A stretch of 64,000 nucleotides of DNA from Prasinococcaceae sp. CCMP 1430. Lineage: Eukaryota > Plantae > Prasinodermophyta. Position 1 is the stretch's first letter. Each line of letters begins with the position of its first letter. The notes under the pieces were generated by a model. That model was not told the DNA's origin and did no database searches. It saw only the letters and a program-made list of their open reading frames with translations. Both the position numbers and the translations under genes were made by a program. The stretch lies in assembly GCA_013416795.1 (NCBI GenBank), contig RQSC01000520.1, positions 12,046-76,045 of the forward strand, written 5' to 3'. Below, in pieces: positions 4,224 to 63,960 of this stretch.

Positions 4224-6097
4224 CTAGTGTTTGTAGGCCTTCGCCGCCAACCCTGTATCCCACATGGCCTGCAGCACCTCCTTGTTCGCGGCCACGAAAC
4301 CGATGTCGTGGTATTGCACACCGTGGCGGCGCGCGAATTTCTCCACCAGTGGCTTGACCATGCGCAGGTTGTGGCGCGGCAGCCGCGGGAAGAGGTGGTG
4401 CTCGATCTGGAACTGGAGCCCGCCGTGGACCCAGTCCATCCACGTGGGACAGGTGATGTTGAGAGTCCCCGAGAGCTGGTGCTCGAACCAGCCCGAGAAG
4501 TGCGTCGGCTTGCCACTGAAGATGGGGCGGCTCCAGTGCGAGAGCGCGATCTGGTCGTGCAGCAGTGCGCAGCACGCCGTGGCCACCAGCACGTACGTGG
4601 CGCGCAGGCCCGCAGTTGGCAGGAGCGACACCACGCCGGCATACCACGACACGAAGAGGGCAATGCCAAGCCACTCAGTGAATTCCTGGTAGCGCGTCAT
4701 GCTCTTGCGTTCCTTGATGAGGCGGACGAGCCCCTGCGCGTACAAGTTAAAGCGCGCGATGCACATGACCGGGTAGTACGTGAAGAATTGCGCCATGACC
4801 GCAAGCCTGGCGAAGCGGTCCAGGGCGAAAGTGCGGTTGTGGTACTGTGATGGGGAGCGCTTGTCAGCGCTGGCCCGCATGTGCGAACACGCCAGGGCAT
4901 GCGAACGCAGAGGCGAGCGCAAACGCCCGCGGGGCTGCGAAGCGCGGGCACACACCTTGGAGAAGACATTGAAGATCTTCTCGCTGACGCACAGGAGCGG
5001 CAGGTGCTGGATGTCAGGGTCATGAGTCGCCGAGTTGCATACCACATGGTGCACGTTGTGCGTCGACTTCCACCACCCTATGGAGACGCCTGTGAGGATG
5101 TTGCCTACCAGGATGCCAAGATGGTAGTTCGACTTGGAACGGATGCCGCGCACCGAGTTGTGACCGACGTCGTGGCCCACAAACGCCACCTGCTGCCAGA
5201 AAGCGCCCAGCAGGGCGCCAGCGCCCACGACCGCCATCGTGCTGGCCGTTTCCGCGTTTCTGTTCCTGCACACCAGCGCGATGCTCGCGACGAGGATCGC
5301 AGCGCACTTTGCAAGCTCCAGCACGTAGAACGATGCGCGCGTCTTGAACATCGAGGTAGCCTCCGTCTCTGCCACCAGCGCGCGCCATTCCTTTGCCACT
5401 GCCGGGAGCTGCTCGTTGTAGCCTGTGGCGAGCACACGTGCGCCCGAGCGTCCGGTCGCGCACCAGACGCACACGTTGCACCAGATTTGGCATCAAGGCA
5501 TCGTGTGGAAGGCGACGGTGTCAGCACAAGAGAGCAAGAGAGATTCTGCAGCTGCGCGTGCGTGCGCTCGGTGCATTGCAGCAAGCGCAGCTTTGCTCGC
5601 GCGTGCTCCGGCTCACCCTTGACGTGTGCGATTTTGAAGCGCTCGAGGCGCGGCCGCAGCACCGGCGGGTGCATGGCGACGAATGCCTCCGACGCGTCCA
5701 CTCCCGCGAGAGCCAGGATCGCGCGATCGCCGCCGGGGTGCGAGTTAAGGAACTCAGTCACGTCGTAAACCTGGGAGAGGCGCACGCGAGCGCGAGCGAG
5801 TCAGCGCCCGCACACACTCGTCGGCAACGCCGAGCGCTCGCGCAAATTCAACGCGGGCTCGAATGCGAGCGTGCCCCGTGCACGCATTTCCCCCATCGCG
5901 CGCTCCTTCGCACTGACGGACTCACGCGCGCGCTCGCGCCATCACGCGTTCCCGCCCACCTTGCCATCGACGACCGTCCAGCAGCTCTCGACGCTTGCGT
6001 GTTTGGCGACCTCCGCCATGGTCACCTCCTTTTGATTGACCGGTAGCGCATCGACGGCTGCACCCACCAACAGGTTGACCTGCTCGGGCGCGCACAT
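4224..6097 (-). CDS. Cytochrome b5-fused front-end desaturase, Delta8-sphingolipid (SLD)/Delta6 type; exons 6097-5960, 5770-5617, 5422-4956, 4844-4224
   Basis: b5 domain CWTVVDGK|[14 protein letters not shown]; His boxes HDVGH, HNVHH, QIEHH; [15 protein letters not shown] resembles plant SLD. Splice phases join cleanly. Confidence 0.9.
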
Positions 6098-49943: not shown

Positions 49944-50150
49944 ACAGGCGCGCAGGCGCGCGCGCGCGCAGTGGCCGCTGGCGCCGCCATCGCCGCACCA
50001 CCCAGCGCCAGCCCGGCCCAGGCCAGCCCGCATCATGCATGCACGCAAACAACACGGAAAAACAACGAGGAAACGCAACAACAACAACAAAAAAAAAAAA
50101 ACCGGAGGAAGGAAAAGTGGAATGTTTGTCGGGCTCTTGTTCGTGTTGGG

Positions 50151-50177
50151 GTAAGGGTTAGGAGTTAGGGTTAGGGT
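50151..50177. repeat. Short degenerate TTAGGG (telomere-like) cluster
   Basis: gtaagggttaggagttagggttagggt, in the divergent GSK3/UAP56 intergenic region. Confidence 0.7.
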
Positions 50178-50766
50178 CTGGGTGCAGGTGCGTTCGCACC
50201 CGCGCGCGCCCGCGCGCACCCGCGCGCCCTTTTTTTTTTTCCCCTCCAGCTCAGGCCCTGTTGGCCTGCGTGTATGGGAGACGCGCGGAACCGGCTCCAG
50301 CCAGGAAGAAGCTTCTTGCCCGAGGCACCGACCGACAGACCGAGGCCCGGCGGGCGTTTCCCGGGTGGTTCCTGGGGGTTCGCGGAGGGGCTCCGACCGA
50401 GACCTCCGCCCGCGACTCCGCCCGCTTGGCCTCTTGCTCTTGTGTGTCCTGCCTGTGGTTGCAGTTGCATGCTGAGTCCTGCACGCAGCTCCTTTTTTTT
50501 TTTTTTTTGCCAGGCCATGCCACGTCTGCACGCCCGACCGAACTCGAAAGAAATGCCGCGCGCGTGGAGTCGCGCGCACAGGTCGCCGTGGGATTTGATG
50601 GCGATGGTCAAATCGCAGGCGGGCCGCGCGCGTGGCGCGGGCGCCACTTCGCGCGTGCCACTTGCCGCGCCAGCAGCCCCGCGCGCCCCACCCACCCACC
50701 CACCACAAACACACACAGCACACAGGCCTGCCCCCGCCCGCAGCCCCGCAGCCCGAGACAGCGACC

Positions 50767-56000: not shown

Positions 56001-57381
56001 ATGGCGGCGCCGCTGCTGCTCTTCTGCGACGGCGCCTCGCGCCGCAACGGCGCGCGCGCCAAGGGCGACAGCGCGGCCGCGGCCGTGCTGCTGGACGCGG
56101 CGACGGAGGCGCTGCTCGTGCAGCGCGCCGTGAGGCTCGCCGAGGGGACGACGAACAACGCCGCGGAGTACGAGGCGCTGCTGATGGGCATACGCATGGC
56201 GGCGGCGATCAGGGGCAAGAAGGCCGCGGTGCGCGCGTTCACCGACAGCGAGCTGCTGTGCAAGCAGTTCCACGGCGAGTGCGGCTGCAAGGTGCCCGCG
56301 CTCCAGGAGATGCTCAAGGAGCTGCGGCGCTCCGTGCGCATGGTCGGGAGCTTCTCGCTGCGCCACGTGCCGCGCGAGCAGAACAAGGCCGCCGATTCGT
56401 TGGCAAATGGCGCTCTTGACGAGCTTGATGTGGGCAAGTCGTTCACGATGGGGCCCGAGGCCAAGGATGTGCGCGCTGCAGAGGAGCAGCACGCAGCGGC
56501 AGTGGAGACGGTCGCGGGCACCTCCAATGCTGGAACGTGCATCGTCCTCACGGAGGCCACACTCGCGGCGCACGAGCTCGCGACTGCCAAGCGCGAGCTT
56601 CGCATGTTCTGCTGCGACGTGCACGGGCCATTCTGGAAGCGTGTCGATGCTCACAAGCCCGTCGCGAGATGCTTCGGCGTGGCCGGCACGAGGGAGTGCT
56701 CGAAGGCAAAGCTCGACCCGTTGCCACGCAGGTGCGCGCGCGCGAGGGAGCGCGCGCGCGCGCGCGAGCGAACCGGCGCGTGCGACCGCCAGCGACTTTG
56801 CGTGCACTACTGACAGATGCCACGCGCGCGCGCGCGCGCTCGTGATCACATGCACGCCCTCGAACACCTCCAGCGAGGAGCGCGGCGAGGGGCTCTTCCA
56901 TTGCACCACGTGCGGACAGAAGTGGGCAGACAAGCTGGCGAAGCGCGGTGTGCCTCAGCCGTGCCCCGGGGAGGCCCCGGACGGCAGCGAAGGCGAGTGC
57001 GGCACACTGGTCGAGCCGCATAAGCTGCGGCCGATGAAGTCGCTGCACGCGCGCGCGAGATACCACCGCGAACAGAGGAGGGCCTACCACAAAGCTCTGT
57101 CGTCAACGAGCAGCGTTAGCAGTGCGGATTCCACCTGGGTCAAAGTTGAGGGCGAGGGCGTTGGGGCCGGCGCCCCAGCTGCCAGGAGCGGTGGGCGGAA
57201 GCATCCACACCGTTCCAAGCATAAGTGCGCGCTGTGCGAGAGCGGCGAGTGCCGGCGAAAGCCACCGGCATCACGGCCTCACGAGTCGTCGGGCTCCACG
57301 ATCTCTAATGCGTCCACCGTCAGTATGATGAGCCAGCTCTCCCTGAGCTATTTCAGAATGGAGACCCCGCCCGTCGCGTAG
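56001..57381 (+). CDS. RNase HI (plant RNH1/archaeal type) fused to Shiftless (SHFL/RyDEN)-like zinc-binding domain; exons 56001-56731, 56874-57381, 412 aa
   Basis: RNase H: LFCDGAS, TNNAAEYEAL, FTDSELL, HVPREQNKAADSLAN. SHFL-like: LTEATL, RMFCCDVHGPFWKRV..KPVARC, PLP, GEGLFHCTTC, GVPQPCP, SRPHESSGST. Phase-2 intron joins cleanly. Confidence 0.85.
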
Positions 57382-57492
57382 TGGGCGTGGAGCGCGCGCG
57401 CGCGCGCGCAGACTAGCGGGAGCTCAGTGTGTATAGTCTATAGTAGTACTACTGTATGTACATGAACGACGTGCCTCGTGACCAAAGGAGAC

Positions 57493-59185
57493 TCAGTGCT
57501 TCGTGACAATCGTGCGGCGCTCGGAGAACGCGTCAAGCGAGTGGTGGCCCCCCTCGCGCCCGAGGCCCGAGTCTTTCATTCCCCCGAAGGCAACGCGCAG
57601 GTCGCGCTGCAGCCAGCAGTTCACCCACACCGTCCCCGCATCAATGGCGCGCGCGATACGCTGCGCGGCCCCGCTGTCGCCGGCGAAGACGCTCGCCGCG
57701 AGGCCGTACTTGGTGCCATTCGCGAGCGCAATCGCCTCCTCCTCGGTGTCGAAGGCTTGCAAGCTGGTCATAGGGCCAAATGTCTCGTTCTGCGTGATCC
57801 GGTCGTCCTGCTTGGCGCCCTCGAGTACGCAAGGCGCAACGAAGCATCCTCGTTGGCAGCGCTCCGGGAGGCCGGCGGGCGTGCCACCGCCGCACAGCAA
57901 GGTCGCGCCATCGTCGGCAGCTTCTTGCAACATTCGGCGCACCTTTTCCACCTGATTAGGATGGATGAGCGGGCCGCATTGCGTGCGACTGTCCTCGGGG
58001 TCGCCGACAACGAGCTCGCGCGCGGCATCCACGAGCGCGCCGCGCACCTTGTCGTACACGGCGCGCTGCACCAGTACACGCTCGCAGCACAGGCAAATCT
58101 GTCCATTGTTGAGGAAAGCCGCGCGAGCGAGCTCCCGCCCCACCAGATCCGTATCGGCGTCCGCCATCACCACGGCCGCGTTCTTGCCTCCTAGCTCGAG
58201 CGAGCAGCGCTGCATCGCGCAAGGAGGGTGTGGCAAGCGGCGAGGGAGAGAGCGAGAGGAAAAGAGAGAGAGAGGGAGGGGAGAAGAAATAGAATGAGCA
58301 CGGGCGAGAACGTGCGCACGACCGCGTCGCCGTAGCATTCGCGCGGACTGGCATCGCGAGCAGCACACGTGCACGCGGTCGCCAGCGCGCGCGCGCACCT
58401 TAAAGAGCCTGCCGCAGTGCCCGCCCACGATGCGGCCGGTGACCGTGCCGCCGGTGAAGGAGACCATCTTGACGCTCGGGTGCCTCACGAGCGCGTCGCC
58501 AGCGCACGCGCCACGGCCGTGGACCACGTTGAAAACACCGGGGGGGATGCCCGCCTCGGCGACGATCTCGCCAAGCGCGAGCGCTGTGAGCGGCGACCAC
58601 TCGCTGGGCTTTGCCACCACGGTGTTACCCATGGCGAGCGCGGGCGCCACCTTCCACGTCAGCAGGTACAGCGGCAGGTTCCACGGCGTGATGAGCGCGC
58701 AAACGCCGTGGGGCGAGCGCTCCTCGTAGTTGATCACGCCGTCGGACAGATGCGCAGGCGTGGCGCCGGCCTCGTGGCGCACGAAGGATGCGAAGAAGCG
58801 AAAGTTCTCCTCTGCGCGTGCGACATCCACCACGCGCGCCAGCTGGCGCGGCTTGCCGCAGTCGAGGCTCTCGAGCAGCGCGAGGTCGTCGGCGCGGGCG
58901 ACGATGGCATCGGCGACGCGGACGAGCGCGTCGCAGCGTCGGTCGACGCTCCAGCCGCGCCATTCGGCGCCCGCCCTCCGCGCGGCCGCCACCGCCGCGT
59001 CGACGTCCTCCTCCGAAGAGTCGGCGACGAGCGTCAGCTCCTCGCCGTACGCCGGGGCGATGTTCGAGAGGGCGTGCGCCGGAGCGCCGCCGCCGCCGCC
59101 GCCGGCCGCCGCCTCCGCCNNNNNNNNNNNNNNNNCCGCCCCAGCCGCCCCCGCCAGCCAACCGCAGCGCCCCGCTGCGCCGCAT
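57493..59185 (-). CDS. ALDH8A1: 2-aminomuconic semialdehyde dehydrogenase-like (ALDH8A1); intron 58398-58210; N-gap 59120-59135 in the 5' part
   Basis: LITPWNLPLYLLTWKVAPALAMGNTVVAKPSE, SFTGG, ELGGKNA, FLNNGQICLC (catalytic Cys), VWVNCWLQRDLRVAFGGMKDSGLGREGG. Confidence 0.88.
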
Positions 59186-59374
59186 GCGCGTGCGCGTGCG
59201 CGCGCCCGCGCGCGCAATCCCGACGCGCCTCTTCGTTGCGCAGTGTATCATACCCACGGGAAACTCTTTTTGGCCCGGCGCGCGAGTGCGCGCGCGCGCG
59301 CGCGCGCGCCCGTTTTTTTTTTTGCGCGCGCGTCAGTTCCCCCCTTCGAAAACGCCGAACGATGTGCATTACTG

Positions 59375-59418
59375 TAACCCTGATTTAACCCTACAGTATA
59401 CTGTAATTGTAACCCTAA
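59375..59418. promoter_or_regulatory. Telo-box-like cluster (TAACCCTGA, TAACCCTAC, AACCCTAA) in the ALDH8A1/KMO bidirectional promoter
   Basis: Three AACCCT motifs within 44 bp of an AT-rich island. Confidence 0.45.
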
Positions 59419-59734
59419 CCTCGACGCAACGTTTTTTTTCCCACAAGCGCGCGCGTTCCGGGGGCGCGTTCCGCGGGTTGAGACGATCGTTGGGATTGAT
59501 TGATTGACGCCGGAGCGCTTCTCACTTTTCGGCGGAGCGAGCGGGCGTCGCTCGGCCCGCGCGCGCGCGCTGCCGCGCGCATCGGTGCGCAAGCAGCTGG
59601 GGGTCGTCGGCGCGCTCGTCGGCGCGGGGGGGGGCTCGAACGGACACTCGTGGGCGCGCGCGCGGCCCAGCCGCGGGAGCAGGCGCAGGCGCGGGGGCGG
59701 GGACGGGGACGGCGGTACGCGGCCCTAGGACGGC

Positions 59735-62268
59735 ATGGTGACAATGTCGCAGGACACGCCGCCCGTGGTGGTCGTTGGGGCGGGGCCGGTCGGCTGCGTG
59801 CTGGCGACGTGCCTTGCGCGCCGCGGTCGGCGCGTGCGCGTGTTCGAACAGCGCGCCGACCCCCGGGCGGGCACGGCGGGCTGGGGCGCCGAGGGGCGCT
59901 CGATCAACCTGGTCGTCACCGGACGCGGCTTCGCGGCACTCGAGCGCTTCGGCCTCGCCGACGCGCTGCGCGCCATCTCGGTGCCCATCCGCGGCCGCAT
60001 GGTGCACAAGGCCGACGGGTCCACCGCGTACCAGCCTTATGGGATCGGCCACGAGGCCAACTACTCGATCTCGCGCGGGGAGATGAACAAAGAGCTCATG
60101 ACGCTCGCGGAGGAGGTGCGAGTGCGCCCCGAATCGGCCCTTCGCGCGCGCAGCGGCACCTCCAACAGCCGCGCCTGTGCCGGCGCCGCCCACACGCCGC
60201 GCGCGACGAAGCTCGCGCTGACCGCGCGGCGAAACTCCCGCACACACACACCGTCCCCATCCTCGTGCGCGACGCGCCCGCGCCGCAGGCCGGCGTTGAG
60301 ATCGCCTTCGGCGCCTCGTACGATGCGAAAGCGAGCGCGCCGCTCGCCGGCCGACACGTGGTGATCACCGCCGACGGCTCGCGGGTGGAGGTGCCCGCGA
60401 AGACGTACGTCTTTGCGGCCGATGGCGCGGGCTCGCGCGTACGCGCGGCGCTCGCTGCGGAGTGCGCGCGCGGCGAGGGCGGCGAGGTGACCTTCAAGGC
60501 GCGTAAGGAGCCGCTGGGCCATGGCTACAAGGAGGTGCTCTTCCCGCTGGGCAGGGACGGCGCGCCCACGATGCGCTCCGACGCGCTGCACATCTGGCCG
60601 AGAGGCCATCACATGCTCATGGCTCTGGCCAACCTGGACGGCTCCTTCACGGGCACCGTCTATCTGCCGGAGGAAGGCAAGGACAGCTTCGACGAGTGTG
60701 CCCAGGCGGGCGAGTTGGGTTCCAAGGACTTCTTTTCAACGCACTACCCCGACGCCACGCCGCTCCTCGACGACGAAATGCTGGACGTCCTGCTGCCCGC
60801 CGAGCGCGGCGGGGGCGCGCTGGGCATGCTGGGGACCATGCGAGTCTCGACGTTCGCGCCCGCGCCCAGGCTGGCGCTCATCGGTGATGCCGCACACGCG
60901 ATTGTACCGTTCTTCGGCCAGGGCTGCAACTGCTGCTTCGAAGATTGCGCGACGCTCGATGCAGCCATCGAAGCGGCTGGCGGCGCCGCCACCGACGCCA
61001 AGCTCGACGTGGCGGTTGCGGCCTGGGCGCGTGAGCGCAAGGTCAATGCTGACGCCATTGCTGACATGGCGCTGGAGAACTTTGAGGAAATGCGCTCAAA
61101 GGTGGGTGACGCGGCCTTCCTGCGCAAGAAGGCGCTTGAGCACGCCGTCGAGGAGGCCATGCCGGAGATGATGCGCTCGCGCTACGCGATGGTCGCGTCG
61201 TCGACCATTTCGTACGCTACATGCTTCCAGGCGGGCTTGGCCATTGAGGGCATCCTGGCGGAGCTCGCGGCGTCCATGGAGGATGACGCGCCCGCCGAGG
61301 CCTTCGATCGCCCGCTCGCGCGTCGCCTCATCGCCGAGCGCCTCACGCCCATACTGCACGGCGCGGGCGTGTCCGACCTGTCGTTTGGCTCAGGTGGCGC
61401 CAAGCGGAAGGTCGGCATTCTCGGATACGGTCATCTCGGGCAGCACCTGTACGGCGCTATCCAAGACGGCGCGCCGGGCACTGAGGGCCTCGAGGTTGCG
61501 TTCGTGTGGAATCGCTCCGCTGACAAGCTCGAATCGCTGCCCGAGGCGCTGCGCCTGACGGGCGACGCCTCGGTGTGTGTGCGCGAGGCGCAGGCGCGCG
61601 GCGTCGGCGTGGTGGTCGAGGTAGCGCATCCCAGCATCTCGGTGGCCCTCGCAGCGCCCCTGCTGCGATCGGGCGTGGACTTCGTGTGTGGCTCGCCCAC
61701 GGCGCTCGCCGACTCGAAGGCTGAGGCTTCCATGCGCGAGGCCACCAAAGGCGTGCAGAGCGGTGGCTTGTACATTCCCAGTGGCGCATTCTGGGGGGCG
61801 CAGGACGTCCAGGCACTCTCCAACCGCGGCGGCCTCGCCGAGCTTGTGGTCACCATGAAGAAGCACCCGTCGAGCTTCAGGCTGAACGACGCCACCTTGG
61901 ACGCGAAGCGCGAGACGGCGACCAAGGAGGGCTCTGGCGAGACGCTGCTGTACGAGGGCCCCGTGCGGGGGCTGTGCCCCCTTGCGCCAAATAACGTGAA
62001 CACGATGGCGTGCGCGGCGCTCGCGGCGGCGGGCTTGGGCTTCGATGGGGTGACAGGGAGGCTGGTCGCGGACCCCTCCCTGGTGACGCACGAGATCGAA
62101 ATTGAGACGCGCGGGCCGACTCGCCCGGACGGCTCGCGCTTCAGCTGCGTCACCAAGCGGTCGAGCCCCGCGCCTCCCGGTGCAGTGACCTCAAAGGCCA
62201 CATACGGCTCGTTCCTGGAGAGCCTCGTGCGCGCAAGGGGGCGCGGCGCGGGCGTGCACTTCGTGTGA
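59735..62268 (+). CDS. KMO: Kynurenine 3-monooxygenase fused to C-terminal ASPDH (aspartate dehydrogenase domain); exons 59735-60115, 60289-62268, 786 aa
   Basis: KMO: VVGAGPVG, GRSINL, HGYKE, LHIWPRG, MALANLDGSFTGT, GDAAHAIVPFFGQG, AIADMALENFEEMR. ASPDH from ~61400: VGILGYGHLG, VVEVAHP, GSPTALAD, GAFWG, LYEGPVRGLCPLAPNNVNTMA, GAVTSKATYGSF. No stop between them. Confidence 0.92.
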
Positions 62269-62435
62269 TGAGTTTTTCCTGTAGAGCACATGTATGTACT
62301 TTGTGTATCGAAGAAGGTGCCCAACTGCGCCATTCGCCACCTGCGCGTGCAGCGCAGCGCGTGCGTGGAGTCGGCAGGGCCGAGGGGCACGCTCGCGCGC
62401 AGAGGGTCACTTGAAGCACTGTACGTAATTAATTA

Positions 62436-63960
62436 TTAGGGCGCCTTGTTGCCTACCGCTCGGTCCTGGCGCTCGACGCGCACCCGCCCCCGTTTCTGCG
62501 GATGTCCGCGGTGCTGCCGGCCGCGCGCTGGTAGCACAGAGAAGGGCCCATTCTTCTCGGCAGAGTCGGCGCGCTCGACAACCACAAAGCCGTCCGAGCG
62601 CATGCGTGCGAGTGCAGCTTCGAGTGCGTCGCCGTCCGCCTTGCCGAGCTCGTACGTGTCGGCCTCCCACGCGGGCGCCAGCGCCTGTGTGCCCGCAGCT
62701 GCCTCCCCCTTTGCCTGCGCCTGGTCGCGTGCGCGGCTCTGCGCGCGCGCGCGCTCGAGCTTGACGAAGGGCACGAAAGAGCGGCCGTTGGGCCGATAGC
62801 CCCTGCCGGGCATCGCGCGCAGGTGCGCCCACGCGCGCACCACCTCGCCCTTGGAGCACCAGCCATCGATCAGCGTGTTGTGCGCCTTCGGACGGCGGCG
62901 GAGCGAGTCAGCGGCGTCGCCTGGGTGCGCGTCGTGACGAGCGAACACTCCACGCGCGTGGACGGGTTGCGCGTGCGCGGGCCCATCGAAGCTCGAAGCG
63001 CGCGCGCGCGCATGCACGCACCTGCAGATCGGCCGCCACGCCCGCGTCGCGCATCTGCTCGAGAGTGAACTCGGCGGCGCTCATGTCGCCTTCGCGGCAG
63101 TAGTGCGCCATGAGCGTGGAGAACGAGACCACGTTGGGCGAGAGTCCCGCCTGCTGCATCTCGGCCAGTGCGCGCTCGGCACCAGCGATGTCGCCGACGT
63201 GACACCGCGCCTGCGCGCGCGGCGCATTGTTCGCGCGGCGCGGGGTACGGGCAGCGTGTCAGCGCGCGCATCGTACGCCAGCGCTCGCGACACGCTCGAG
63301 CGCGCCGGTGCACGGGCAGACGCATCGAGGTGGCGCGCGCGAGCGCGCGCGCACCCGAATGAGCGTGTTGAAGGTCACAACGTCCGGAGCGACGCCCGCG
63401 CGTTCCATGTCCGCCAGCGTCTCATCCAGCGCTCGCACGTCGCGCGCATCGCCGTGCGCGCGCAGCAACACGTTGAACGAGACGACGGTAGGCGGCGGTA
63501 CGCCGTCGGCTCCCATGCGCGCGAGCAGGGCGCGCGCGCTGCGGACGTCGCCCCTGTCGCAGCACCACGCGATGACCGCGTTGTAGCTCACCGCATCGGC
63601 CTGCACGCCGGCCACGCGCATCTCCTCCACGGCTGCGAACGCGGCGGAGCCCTCGCCTCGCGCCGAGTGCCACCGGAAGAGGGTCGTGTACGTCACCACG
63701 TCGCGCGCCACCCCGGCGGCCGCCATGTCGCGCAGCGTTTCGTCCACGGCAGGCCCATCGCCGGCATCGACCGCGCCTTTGAGCAGCGTGTTGAAGGTCC
63801 ACGCGTCTGGCTCCACGCCTCGCTCGGCCATGTGCGCCAGCACGGCGCGCGCGCCGGCCAGGTCGCCTCGCACGCACTTGTCGCGCAGCGACTTGTTGTA
63901 CGCGAGCACGCGCCGCGACGAGCCGGCGGCGGCGGCGTTCCCGATGGGGGGGGTGGTCTG
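62436..63960 (-). CDS. Pentatricopeptide-repeat (P-type PPR) protein, about 8 repeats, multi-exon; 5' end probably outside the window
   Basis: 35-aa repeats: PDAWTFNTLL, RDVVTYTTL, ADAVSYNAVI, PTVVSFNVLL, PDVVTFNTLI, PNVVSFSTLM, AHNTLIDGWC. Confidence 0.9.

Follow-up and report, generated by a model that had tools for sequence, protein, structure and literature searches.

We analysed a 64,000-nt stretch of DNA from the alga Prasinococcaceae sp. CCMP 1430 (contig RQSC01000520.1, positions 12,046 to 76,045; hereafter the window, from whose first base all coordinates are counted) in which a minus-strand aldehyde dehydrogenase (ALDH) gene lies head to head with a plus-strand gene that joins kynurenine 3-monooxygenase (KMO) to an aspartate dehydrogenase (ASPDH)-type domain, here predicted to be a 2-aminomuconate reductase (AMR). 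A preliminary description, made from the letters alone, had proposed this divergent arrangement for an ALDH8A1-like and a KMO-ASPDH gene, and it is borne out by the open reading frames (ORFs), the Pfam matches and the two introns, both of which are seen in RNA contigs. The exons were searched separately and unjoined, with the ALDH also searched as its stop-free in-frame stretch 57496-59118, intron included. Base composition at the locus is about 68% G+C, with an abundance of (GC)n and (GGC)n runs.

The ALDH reading frame is free of stops on the minus strand from 59118 down to 57496. The readable part of exon 1 (58399..59119; Pfam Aldedh, 2.8e-72, profile positions 9-229) is followed by a 189-nt GT..AG intron (58210..58398) and by exon 2 (57493..58209; 238 codons and the stop; Aldedh, 4.9e-80, profile positions 231-461), and it is exon 2 that holds the codons for the catalytic Glu (58195-58197) and the catalytic Cys (58093-58095) as well as the second substrate arginine. 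Upstream, exon 1 runs into a (CGC)n tandem repeat (59085-59119) within the Gly/Ala-rich N-terminal coding region and then into an abutting assembly gap written as 16 N (59120..59135, no strand), and the start codon and N-terminus lie outside the readable sequence. The intron is in frame and stop-free, aligns to nothing in the solved structures of 2-aminomuconate 6-semialdehyde dehydrogenases (AMSDHs), and is skipped exactly by an RNA contig (X15, record 8) that joins 58209 to 58399. Being a multiple of three without a stop, it is read through by prokaryote-style gene callers (P0051, 499 aa), so that database entries come to contain 63 spurious residues.

On the plus strand, the KMO-AMR gene comprises two exons and 786 codons (127 + 659), with its stop at 62266-62268. 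Exon 1 (59735..60115) supplies 127 codons from the ATG, encodes the FAD-binding KMO N-terminus and matches Pfam FAD_binding_3, DAO and NAD_binding_8. After a 173-nt GT..AG intron (60116..60288), exon 2 encodes the remainder of the monooxygenase with its C-terminal domain and a short linker (60289..61398), followed by the ASPDH-type domain and the stop (61402..62268; Pfam NAD_binding_3 and Asp_DH_C). Between the two genes lies a divergent intergenic region (59136..59734, no strand) that contains three TAACCCT motifs and an island richer in AT, and which in the window is written without about 156 nt at 59590-59618.

The solved structures closest to both ALDH exons are the AMSDHs 4u3w and 4i1w (2.5e-60 and 6.5e-54), and the whole in-frame stretch matches solved AMSDH structures at 3e-114. 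In an alignment to the Pseudomonas fluorescens AMSDH (chains 4i1w and 4npi), Arg120 and Asn169 (both in exon 1), Glu268, Cys302 and Arg464 are all kept, within the motifs VARAEENFR at R120, LELGG at E268, GQICLC at C302 and LQRDLR at R464. The roles of the catalytic Cys302 and Glu268 (P. fluorescens numbering) have been described, and strict conservation of the two arginines sets the hydroxymuconic-semialdehyde dehydrogenase family apart from other ALDHs, which lack them (Huo et al., PMC4286809). The closest database proteins are about 50% identical and mostly bacterial or metagenomic, and where they are named they are aminomuconate-semialdehyde or 2-hydroxymuconate-semialdehyde dehydrogenases. 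TIGR03216 (2-hydroxymuconic semialdehyde dehydrogenase) is the best or second-best NCBIfam model for each exon, and the exon scores of 269.5 and 231 bits, about 500 in sum, fall below the 693 cut-off of this bacterial equivalog. Animal ALDH8A1 is absent from the 120 best database matches, and there is none in the PDB. With its structure matches, catalytic residues and dual arginines, the gene can be called ALDH8A1-like, as first described, at the level of the AMSDH/ALDH8A1 family: judged by its sequence, it is a member of the hydroxymuconic-/aminomuconate-semialdehyde dehydrogenase (HMSDH/AMSDH) family, which includes ALDH8A1.

The identification of the monooxygenase as KMO was likewise confirmed. 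The ten best PDB matches of each exon are KMO (3e-19 for exon 1; 1.3e-38 for the exon 2 part against P. fluorescens KMO), together covering residues 4-123 and 146-435 of the P. fluorescens enzyme, and the next monooxygenase family scores 1e-7 or worse, so that KMO matches extend over the whole length and are better than those to other monooxygenases. Among AMR-domain proteins of 362-1153 aa, a KMO part is present in only two clusters, the window's own and that of one relative. The fusion shows that KMO and AMR belong to a common pathway, not that substrate is channelled between them.

The evidence on the C-terminal domain has to be read together with a recent preprint, in which human ASPDH was found to be an NAD(P)H-dependent AMR that makes (2S,E)-2-aminohex-3-enedioate and to carry a His223 two residues upstream of the prokaryotic catalytic His, the function having been assigned by way of co-evolution in animals and biochemistry of the human enzyme (bioRxiv 10.64898/2026.06.05.730449, June 2026). 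The proposal in the preliminary description that the ALDH product is the substrate of the ASPDH-type enzyme is thus one that the preprint has shown for the human protein. Identity of the algal domain is about 50% with animal ASPDH/AMR and with the Capsaspora protein, and rises to 55-62% with unnamed metagenomic proteins. In alignments of AMR-type sequences (26, then 84 sequences), 37 columns show a single residue in all animal, choanoflagellate, amoebozoan and environmental sequences, and one of these is the His equivalent to human His223. In the alga this His is encoded at 62089-62091 within the motif THEIEIE, and its column is all His in the eukaryotic sequences (26, then 54 sequences), vertebrates included; the link to human His223 was made via the vertebrate orthologues and the text of the preprint. 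A quick maximum-likelihood search, read as an unrooted tree, places the domain inside a 56-row, mainly eukaryotic group (SH-aLRT 92) and, within it, in a 21-sequence clade of environmental marine eukaryote sequences (SH-aLRT 100) that stands apart from the holozoan group. As it does not branch from within the animal sequences, the domain is neither a contaminant of animal origin nor one recently transferred from an animal. The preliminary ASPDH assignment therefore holds for the type of domain, and the domain pair, the His and the tree make it one of the AMR kind: the domain falls among the eukaryotic AMR sequences, and AMR activity is predicted for it.

Both genes are transcribed and spliced, as seen in contigs of transcriptome type from the same organism (X15 and X16). 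Besides the X15 contig that lacks the ALDH intron, RNA contigs from X15 and X16 join 60113 to 60287 (equivalent to 60115/60289, owing to a repeated AG) and thereby remove the KMO intron. A single 2,324-nt X15 RNA contig spans 59791-62287 through KMO and AMR, which places both on one mRNA. The two genes are found in two transcriptome assemblies, and pieces of both in a seawater metatranscriptome (X17).

The linkage is conserved in a second species, a point that the preliminary description had put forward for checking. Contigs of a relative (L001-L006, from Tara and other marine samples, G+C 68%) carry an ALDH and a KMO-AMR gene head to head, and since these contigs are unscaffolded they lend independent support to the adjacency. 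Protein identity between window and relative is 75-76% for the ALDH, 67% for KMO and 77% for AMR, and the relative's cluster holds full-length KMO-AMR products of 791 aa. Both introns of the window are missing from the relative's genes, which have two other introns at different sites. The relative's pair is flanked by topoisomerase and HEAT-repeat genes, and nothing on these contigs but the pair itself aligns to the window; the same pair within different flanks means that the linkage has outlived substantial divergence and the rearrangement of its surroundings.

The rest of the pathway is documented for Prasinoderma coloniale, whose genome (69.8% G+C) has both NAD pathways as well as TDO/IDO, AFM, KMO, KYU, HAAO and ACMSD, with KYU and HAAO fused, and in which the pathway was suggested to serve picolinate production (Li et al. 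2020, PMC7455551). Of the genes that the preliminary description had asked for beyond the locus, TDO/IDO, AFM, KYU, HAAO and ACMSD are thus present, and its green-lineage attribution agrees with the fit of the G+C content and the published KYU-HAAO fusion to P. coloniale. That account mentions no AMSDH, no ASPDH-type domain on KMO and no such gene pair (Li et al. 2020, PMC7455551).

We consider it likely that the locus is a genuine, expressed and evolutionarily conserved divergent pair of kynurenine-pathway genes in a Prasinoderma-type green alga, working by the full mechanism that we propose here. The ALDH would use NAD+ to oxidise 2-aminomuconate 6-semialdehyde (2-AMS) to 2-aminomuconate, the N-terminal KMO domain of the fusion would hydroxylate kynurenine with FAD and NADPH, and the C-terminal AMR domain would, like human ASPDH, convert 2-aminomuconate and NAD(P)H to 2-aminohex-3-enedioate. 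The chemically labile ALDH product would be the AMR substrate, AMR could spend the NADH made by the ALDH, and one divergent promoter region of about 1 kb, which we infer to be shared, would co-regulate the pair and keep the ALDH and AMR activities matched. With TDO, KYNU-HAAO and ACMSD elsewhere in the genome, tryptophan would pass the picolinate branch point into full catabolism. Given both an AMSDH and an AMR, 2-AMS would be oxidisable and its product reducible, so picolinate, the end product proposed in 2020, is not necessarily where the Prasinoderma route stops; onward catabolism is probable, and some picolinate could still form. In this way, the Prasinoderma pathway could take the carbon and nitrogen of tryptophan onward.

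Several points weigh against this reading. KMO and AMR are not consecutive steps of the pathway. The RNA evidence consists of assembled contigs, which are blind to expression levels, transcript ends and co-variation. The ALDH start and N-terminus, on which targeting and the true promoter spacing depend, lie in unread sequence. The TAACCCT motifs are neither kept in the relative nor unique to the locus, and one environmental contig (L007, described below) joins the ALDH to other genes at the assembly gap. Lastly, the genome is compact, so head-to-head gene pairs are common in it.

The last of these points underlies the alternative that survives best, namely that both genes belong to the pathway and are neighbours by chance, each with its own promoter and without co-regulation, as neighbours in a compact genome often lie head to head. 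Gene density is indeed high throughout the 64-kb window, and the spacing is wider than the roughly 550 bp given in the preliminary description: on the DNA contig that bridges the gap (X1), the last readable ALDH codon lies about 1,163 nt from the KMO ATG, so the true distance is about 1.1 kb including unread sequence. The AT-rich island with three AACCCT motifs that had been described as common to the two genes is present, with G+C falling to 0.587 at 59250-59549 (0.66-0.79 on either side) and with motifs that are in fact TAACCCT (59375-59381, 59386-59392 and 59410-59416; 5 copies in the window, 0.96 expected by chance). As evidence for anything specific to this pathway, it did not hold: the other two copies recur at 50154-50173, in a second AT-richer intergenic island with poly-A and poly-T runs, and a search of the relative's intergenic region for TAACCCT found none. 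As such, the motifs, which resemble telomere repeats, look like a promoter element used generally in this genome and are no evidence for a pathway-specific switch. In the end, we regard chance adjacency as unlikely, since the pair is kept in a relative of about 75% identity in which both flanks differ and since several further lineages also have AMR genes grouped with genes of the pathway.

We would like to note, as a separate observation, that the stretch 50140-50180 of the window holds this second telomere-repeat-like motif cluster (GGGTTAGG, AGTTAGGGTTAGGG), which may be a common promoter element of the genome.

A different function of the C-terminal domain appears less probable still. As a true L-aspartate dehydrogenase it would feed iminoaspartate to quinolinate synthase and thereby link the alga's two NAD routes; P. 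coloniale has quinolinate synthase along with both NAD pathways, and the Pfam domains are those of aspartate dehydrogenase, yet the domain misses every NCBIfam aspartate-dehydrogenase cut-off, and widely so (best PRK13304, 68.5 bits against 267). The position of the Thermotoga maritima ASPDH His193 is occupied by Glu in the alga, whose His lies 3 residues upstream (2 without the alignment gap), as it does in AMR. Both the grouping of the domain with animal AMR, of which the human member is AMR-active according to the preprint, and a head-to-head neighbour that would make the AMR substrate likewise speak for AMR, leaving L-aspartate dehydrogenase a very doubtful assignment.

The assembly gap between the two genes required separate attention, as it sits in a GC-rich trinucleotide repeat. 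Among Logan contigs compared with 57300-62400, the 12,344-nt X1 DNA contig bridges it, matching 57300-59119, 59136-59590 and 59618-62400 with zero differences and carrying 407 bases (X1 positions 5165-5573) in place of the 16 N of the window. X1 may be the source sample of the genome and therefore counts as a second assembly and not as an independent organism. Its match to both flanks indicates that the two sides of the gap are continuous and that the gap is far longer than written, with about 407 nt truly missing that probably hold the N-terminal ALDH codons; the reading frame across the gap cannot be derived from the window. An X16 RNA contig has unaligned sequence beyond 59106 that continues the ALDH frame as ...VPDGV-GGGGG, and in the relative the ALDH gene has a further exon at its N-terminal end (M...ARNWVAGSG...LAPATGQQ), with an intron between it and LARVADS. 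The corresponding ALDH start of the window must lie in or just past the unread 407 bases. Both frames upstream of the gap encode Gly/Ala-rich peptides with weak resemblance to the relative's N-terminal exon, and no start could be assigned; a look-up of the exact product of the 209-aa exon-1 ORF, aimed at a further gap-spanning contig, returned no record.

The Tara-derived Logan contig L007 was considered as a filler of the gap and rejected. It matches the window at 97% identity between 59117 and 55602, departs exactly at the gap, and past the GGC run (L007:1-2363) enters unrelated SUMO-activating-enzyme (UBA2-like) and Cupin_3 genes, with no other match in the window. Because the sequence switch falls inside the GGC repeat, we read L007 as probably a chimera formed there, or otherwise as a true rearrangement in an ocean population. 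That the scaffold gap joins unlinked contigs, so that this strain would have no such cluster, is the most improbable explanation of all: the position of the gap between the two genes in a trinucleotide repeat and the path of L007 from the ALDH into other genes would suit it, but X1 spans both sides without mismatch, unscaffolded contigs of the relative repeat the arrangement, and L007 switches at the kind of site where k-mer chimeras typically arise.

Upstream of the KMO start, X1 also has 183 bases where the window has 27 (59590-59618; 156 extra). This stretch looks collapsed or polymorphic in the window, and a comparable additional G-rich segment is present in the Tara contig L008.

Set against known systems, the divergent pair in Prasinoderma combines known enzymes in a new architecture, a KMO-AMR fusion opposite a divergent AMSDH, and does so in a lineage believed to lack AMR. 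According to the preprint, AMR homologues among eukaryotes occur for the most part only in metazoans and Capsaspora and are lacking in plants, which retain only QPRT; it mentions neither a fusion nor an alga (bioRxiv 10.64898/2026.06.05.730449). In the literature searched, we did not find the KMO-AMR fusion, its pairing with an ALDH or an AMR in a green alga; the kynurenine pathway of P. coloniale itself was already published. The algal domain shares with human ASPDH/AMR the same two Pfam domains, the invariant residues including the His223 match and the same pathway partners, and it differs in that it comes from a green alga, forms the C-terminal half of a fusion with KMO and belongs to a separate clade that bears the motifs THEIEI, RSSPAP and a C-terminal GVHFV. 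The ALDH resembles P. fluorescens AMSDH (NbaE) and human ALDH8A1 in its Aldedh fold, Cys302, Glu268 and the dual Arg120/Arg464 carboxylate clamp, whereas its identity is about 50% and its N-terminal region is of low complexity and Gly/Ala-rich.

Kynurenine gene clusters have been reported from Sciaridae (AMR, HAAO, ACMSD, ALDH8A1 and AFMID) and from ascomycetes (with AMD) (bioRxiv 10.64898/2026.06.05.730449). As in those clusters, late catabolic genes are linked in the alga, including one for an enzyme predicted to act on 2-aminomuconate. In contrast, the algal locus has two genes with three predicted activities, brings in the early-step KMO by fusion, is found in Viridiplantae, and would use AMR and not the deaminase of the fungi. 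The KYU-HAAO fusion of P. coloniale reflects the same organism, pathway and tendency to fuse enzymes, while the published pathway stops at ACMSD with picolinate as the proposed end product (PMC7455551). A KMO-AMR fusion paired with the predicted maker of the AMR substrate, and kept in two algal species, provides independent genomic support for the reassignment of ASPDH to AMR. It also corrects the published distribution of AMR ("largely restricted to metazoans, absent from plants"), as AMR is not confined to animals.

Stand-alone AMR genes most similar to the algal domain adjoin pathway genes in contigs of other marine eukaryotes (L016-L020, G+C 38-56%). In L016-L018, AMR lies beside an ACMSD fused to a kynureninase-like domain, in L020 it occurs with KYNU and an intron-bearing AMSDH-type ALDH, and a JGI contig (3300072015) has KYNU, an ALDH and an ACMSD-PhzF fusion near AMR. 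Bacterial AMR-type proteins with the same His exist as well. A Xanthomonadales chromosome assembled from a metagenome (OY760942.1; L024:1321-7720) carries KYNU, ACMSD, an AMSDH-type ALDH, HAAO, an AMR with the AMR histidine, and PhzF; kynurenine-linked AMR in bacteria is not described in the preprint (bioRxiv 10.64898/2026.06.05.730449). In ten loci of bacteria belonging to several phyla, a PhzF/PBLD-like gene is the immediate, same-strand neighbour of AMR: in nine (L021, L022, L023, L026, L028, L029, L030, L031 and L035) it ends 30-60 nt before AMR (PhzF-like gene at about 5070-5970, AMR from 6001), and in L024:5962-7720 PhzF overlaps the AMR stop by 20 nt. In addition, a 688-aa product from a Tara metatranscriptome (P0014; L067:248-2314, ERR1719329) fuses a kynurenine/alpha-aminoadipate aminotransferase (human KAT II, 4e-111) to an AMR that is sister to Perkinsus AMR in the tree.

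These neighbours make a PhzF/PBLD-type isomerase a candidate for the step after the reduction of 2-aminomuconate, and the P0014 fusion suggests that an aminotransferase of the KAT II/AADAT type may transaminate the AMR product. The steps after AMR are given as unknown in the preprint (bioRxiv 10.64898/2026.06.05.730449), and these two families would be concrete candidates for them. We tentatively propose that AMR, instead of being a metazoan invention, is an old enzyme common to many protists, some bacteria and a basal green alga, and that its neighbours and fusions flag PhzF/PBLD and KAT II/AADAT for the steps beyond 2-aminohex-3-enedioate, though we hold this combined proposal to be possible and not yet probable. 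If it is true, the Prasinoderma locus would be a piece of a tryptophan-catabolism gene set that lacks only the final steps to 2-oxoadipate.

A few minor observations were made along the way. An Rfam scan of 57000-62600 yielded zero RNA families. A match listed as 85% identical on a 481-kb contig of a metagenome-assembled genome labelled "bacterium" (L065) was rejected as a Prasinoderma relative; its AMR gene is a multi-intron eukaryotic one, and the label of the contig or bin is probably wrong, its source being eukaryotic. Finally, a well-supported clade of bacterial ASPDH-like proteins (L036, L039, L041, L044, L045, L048, L050-L055, L059, L060 and L063) has Ala, Ser or Gly at the position of the AMR His, with no His in the next few residues, and may on this sequence pattern represent a third functional type.

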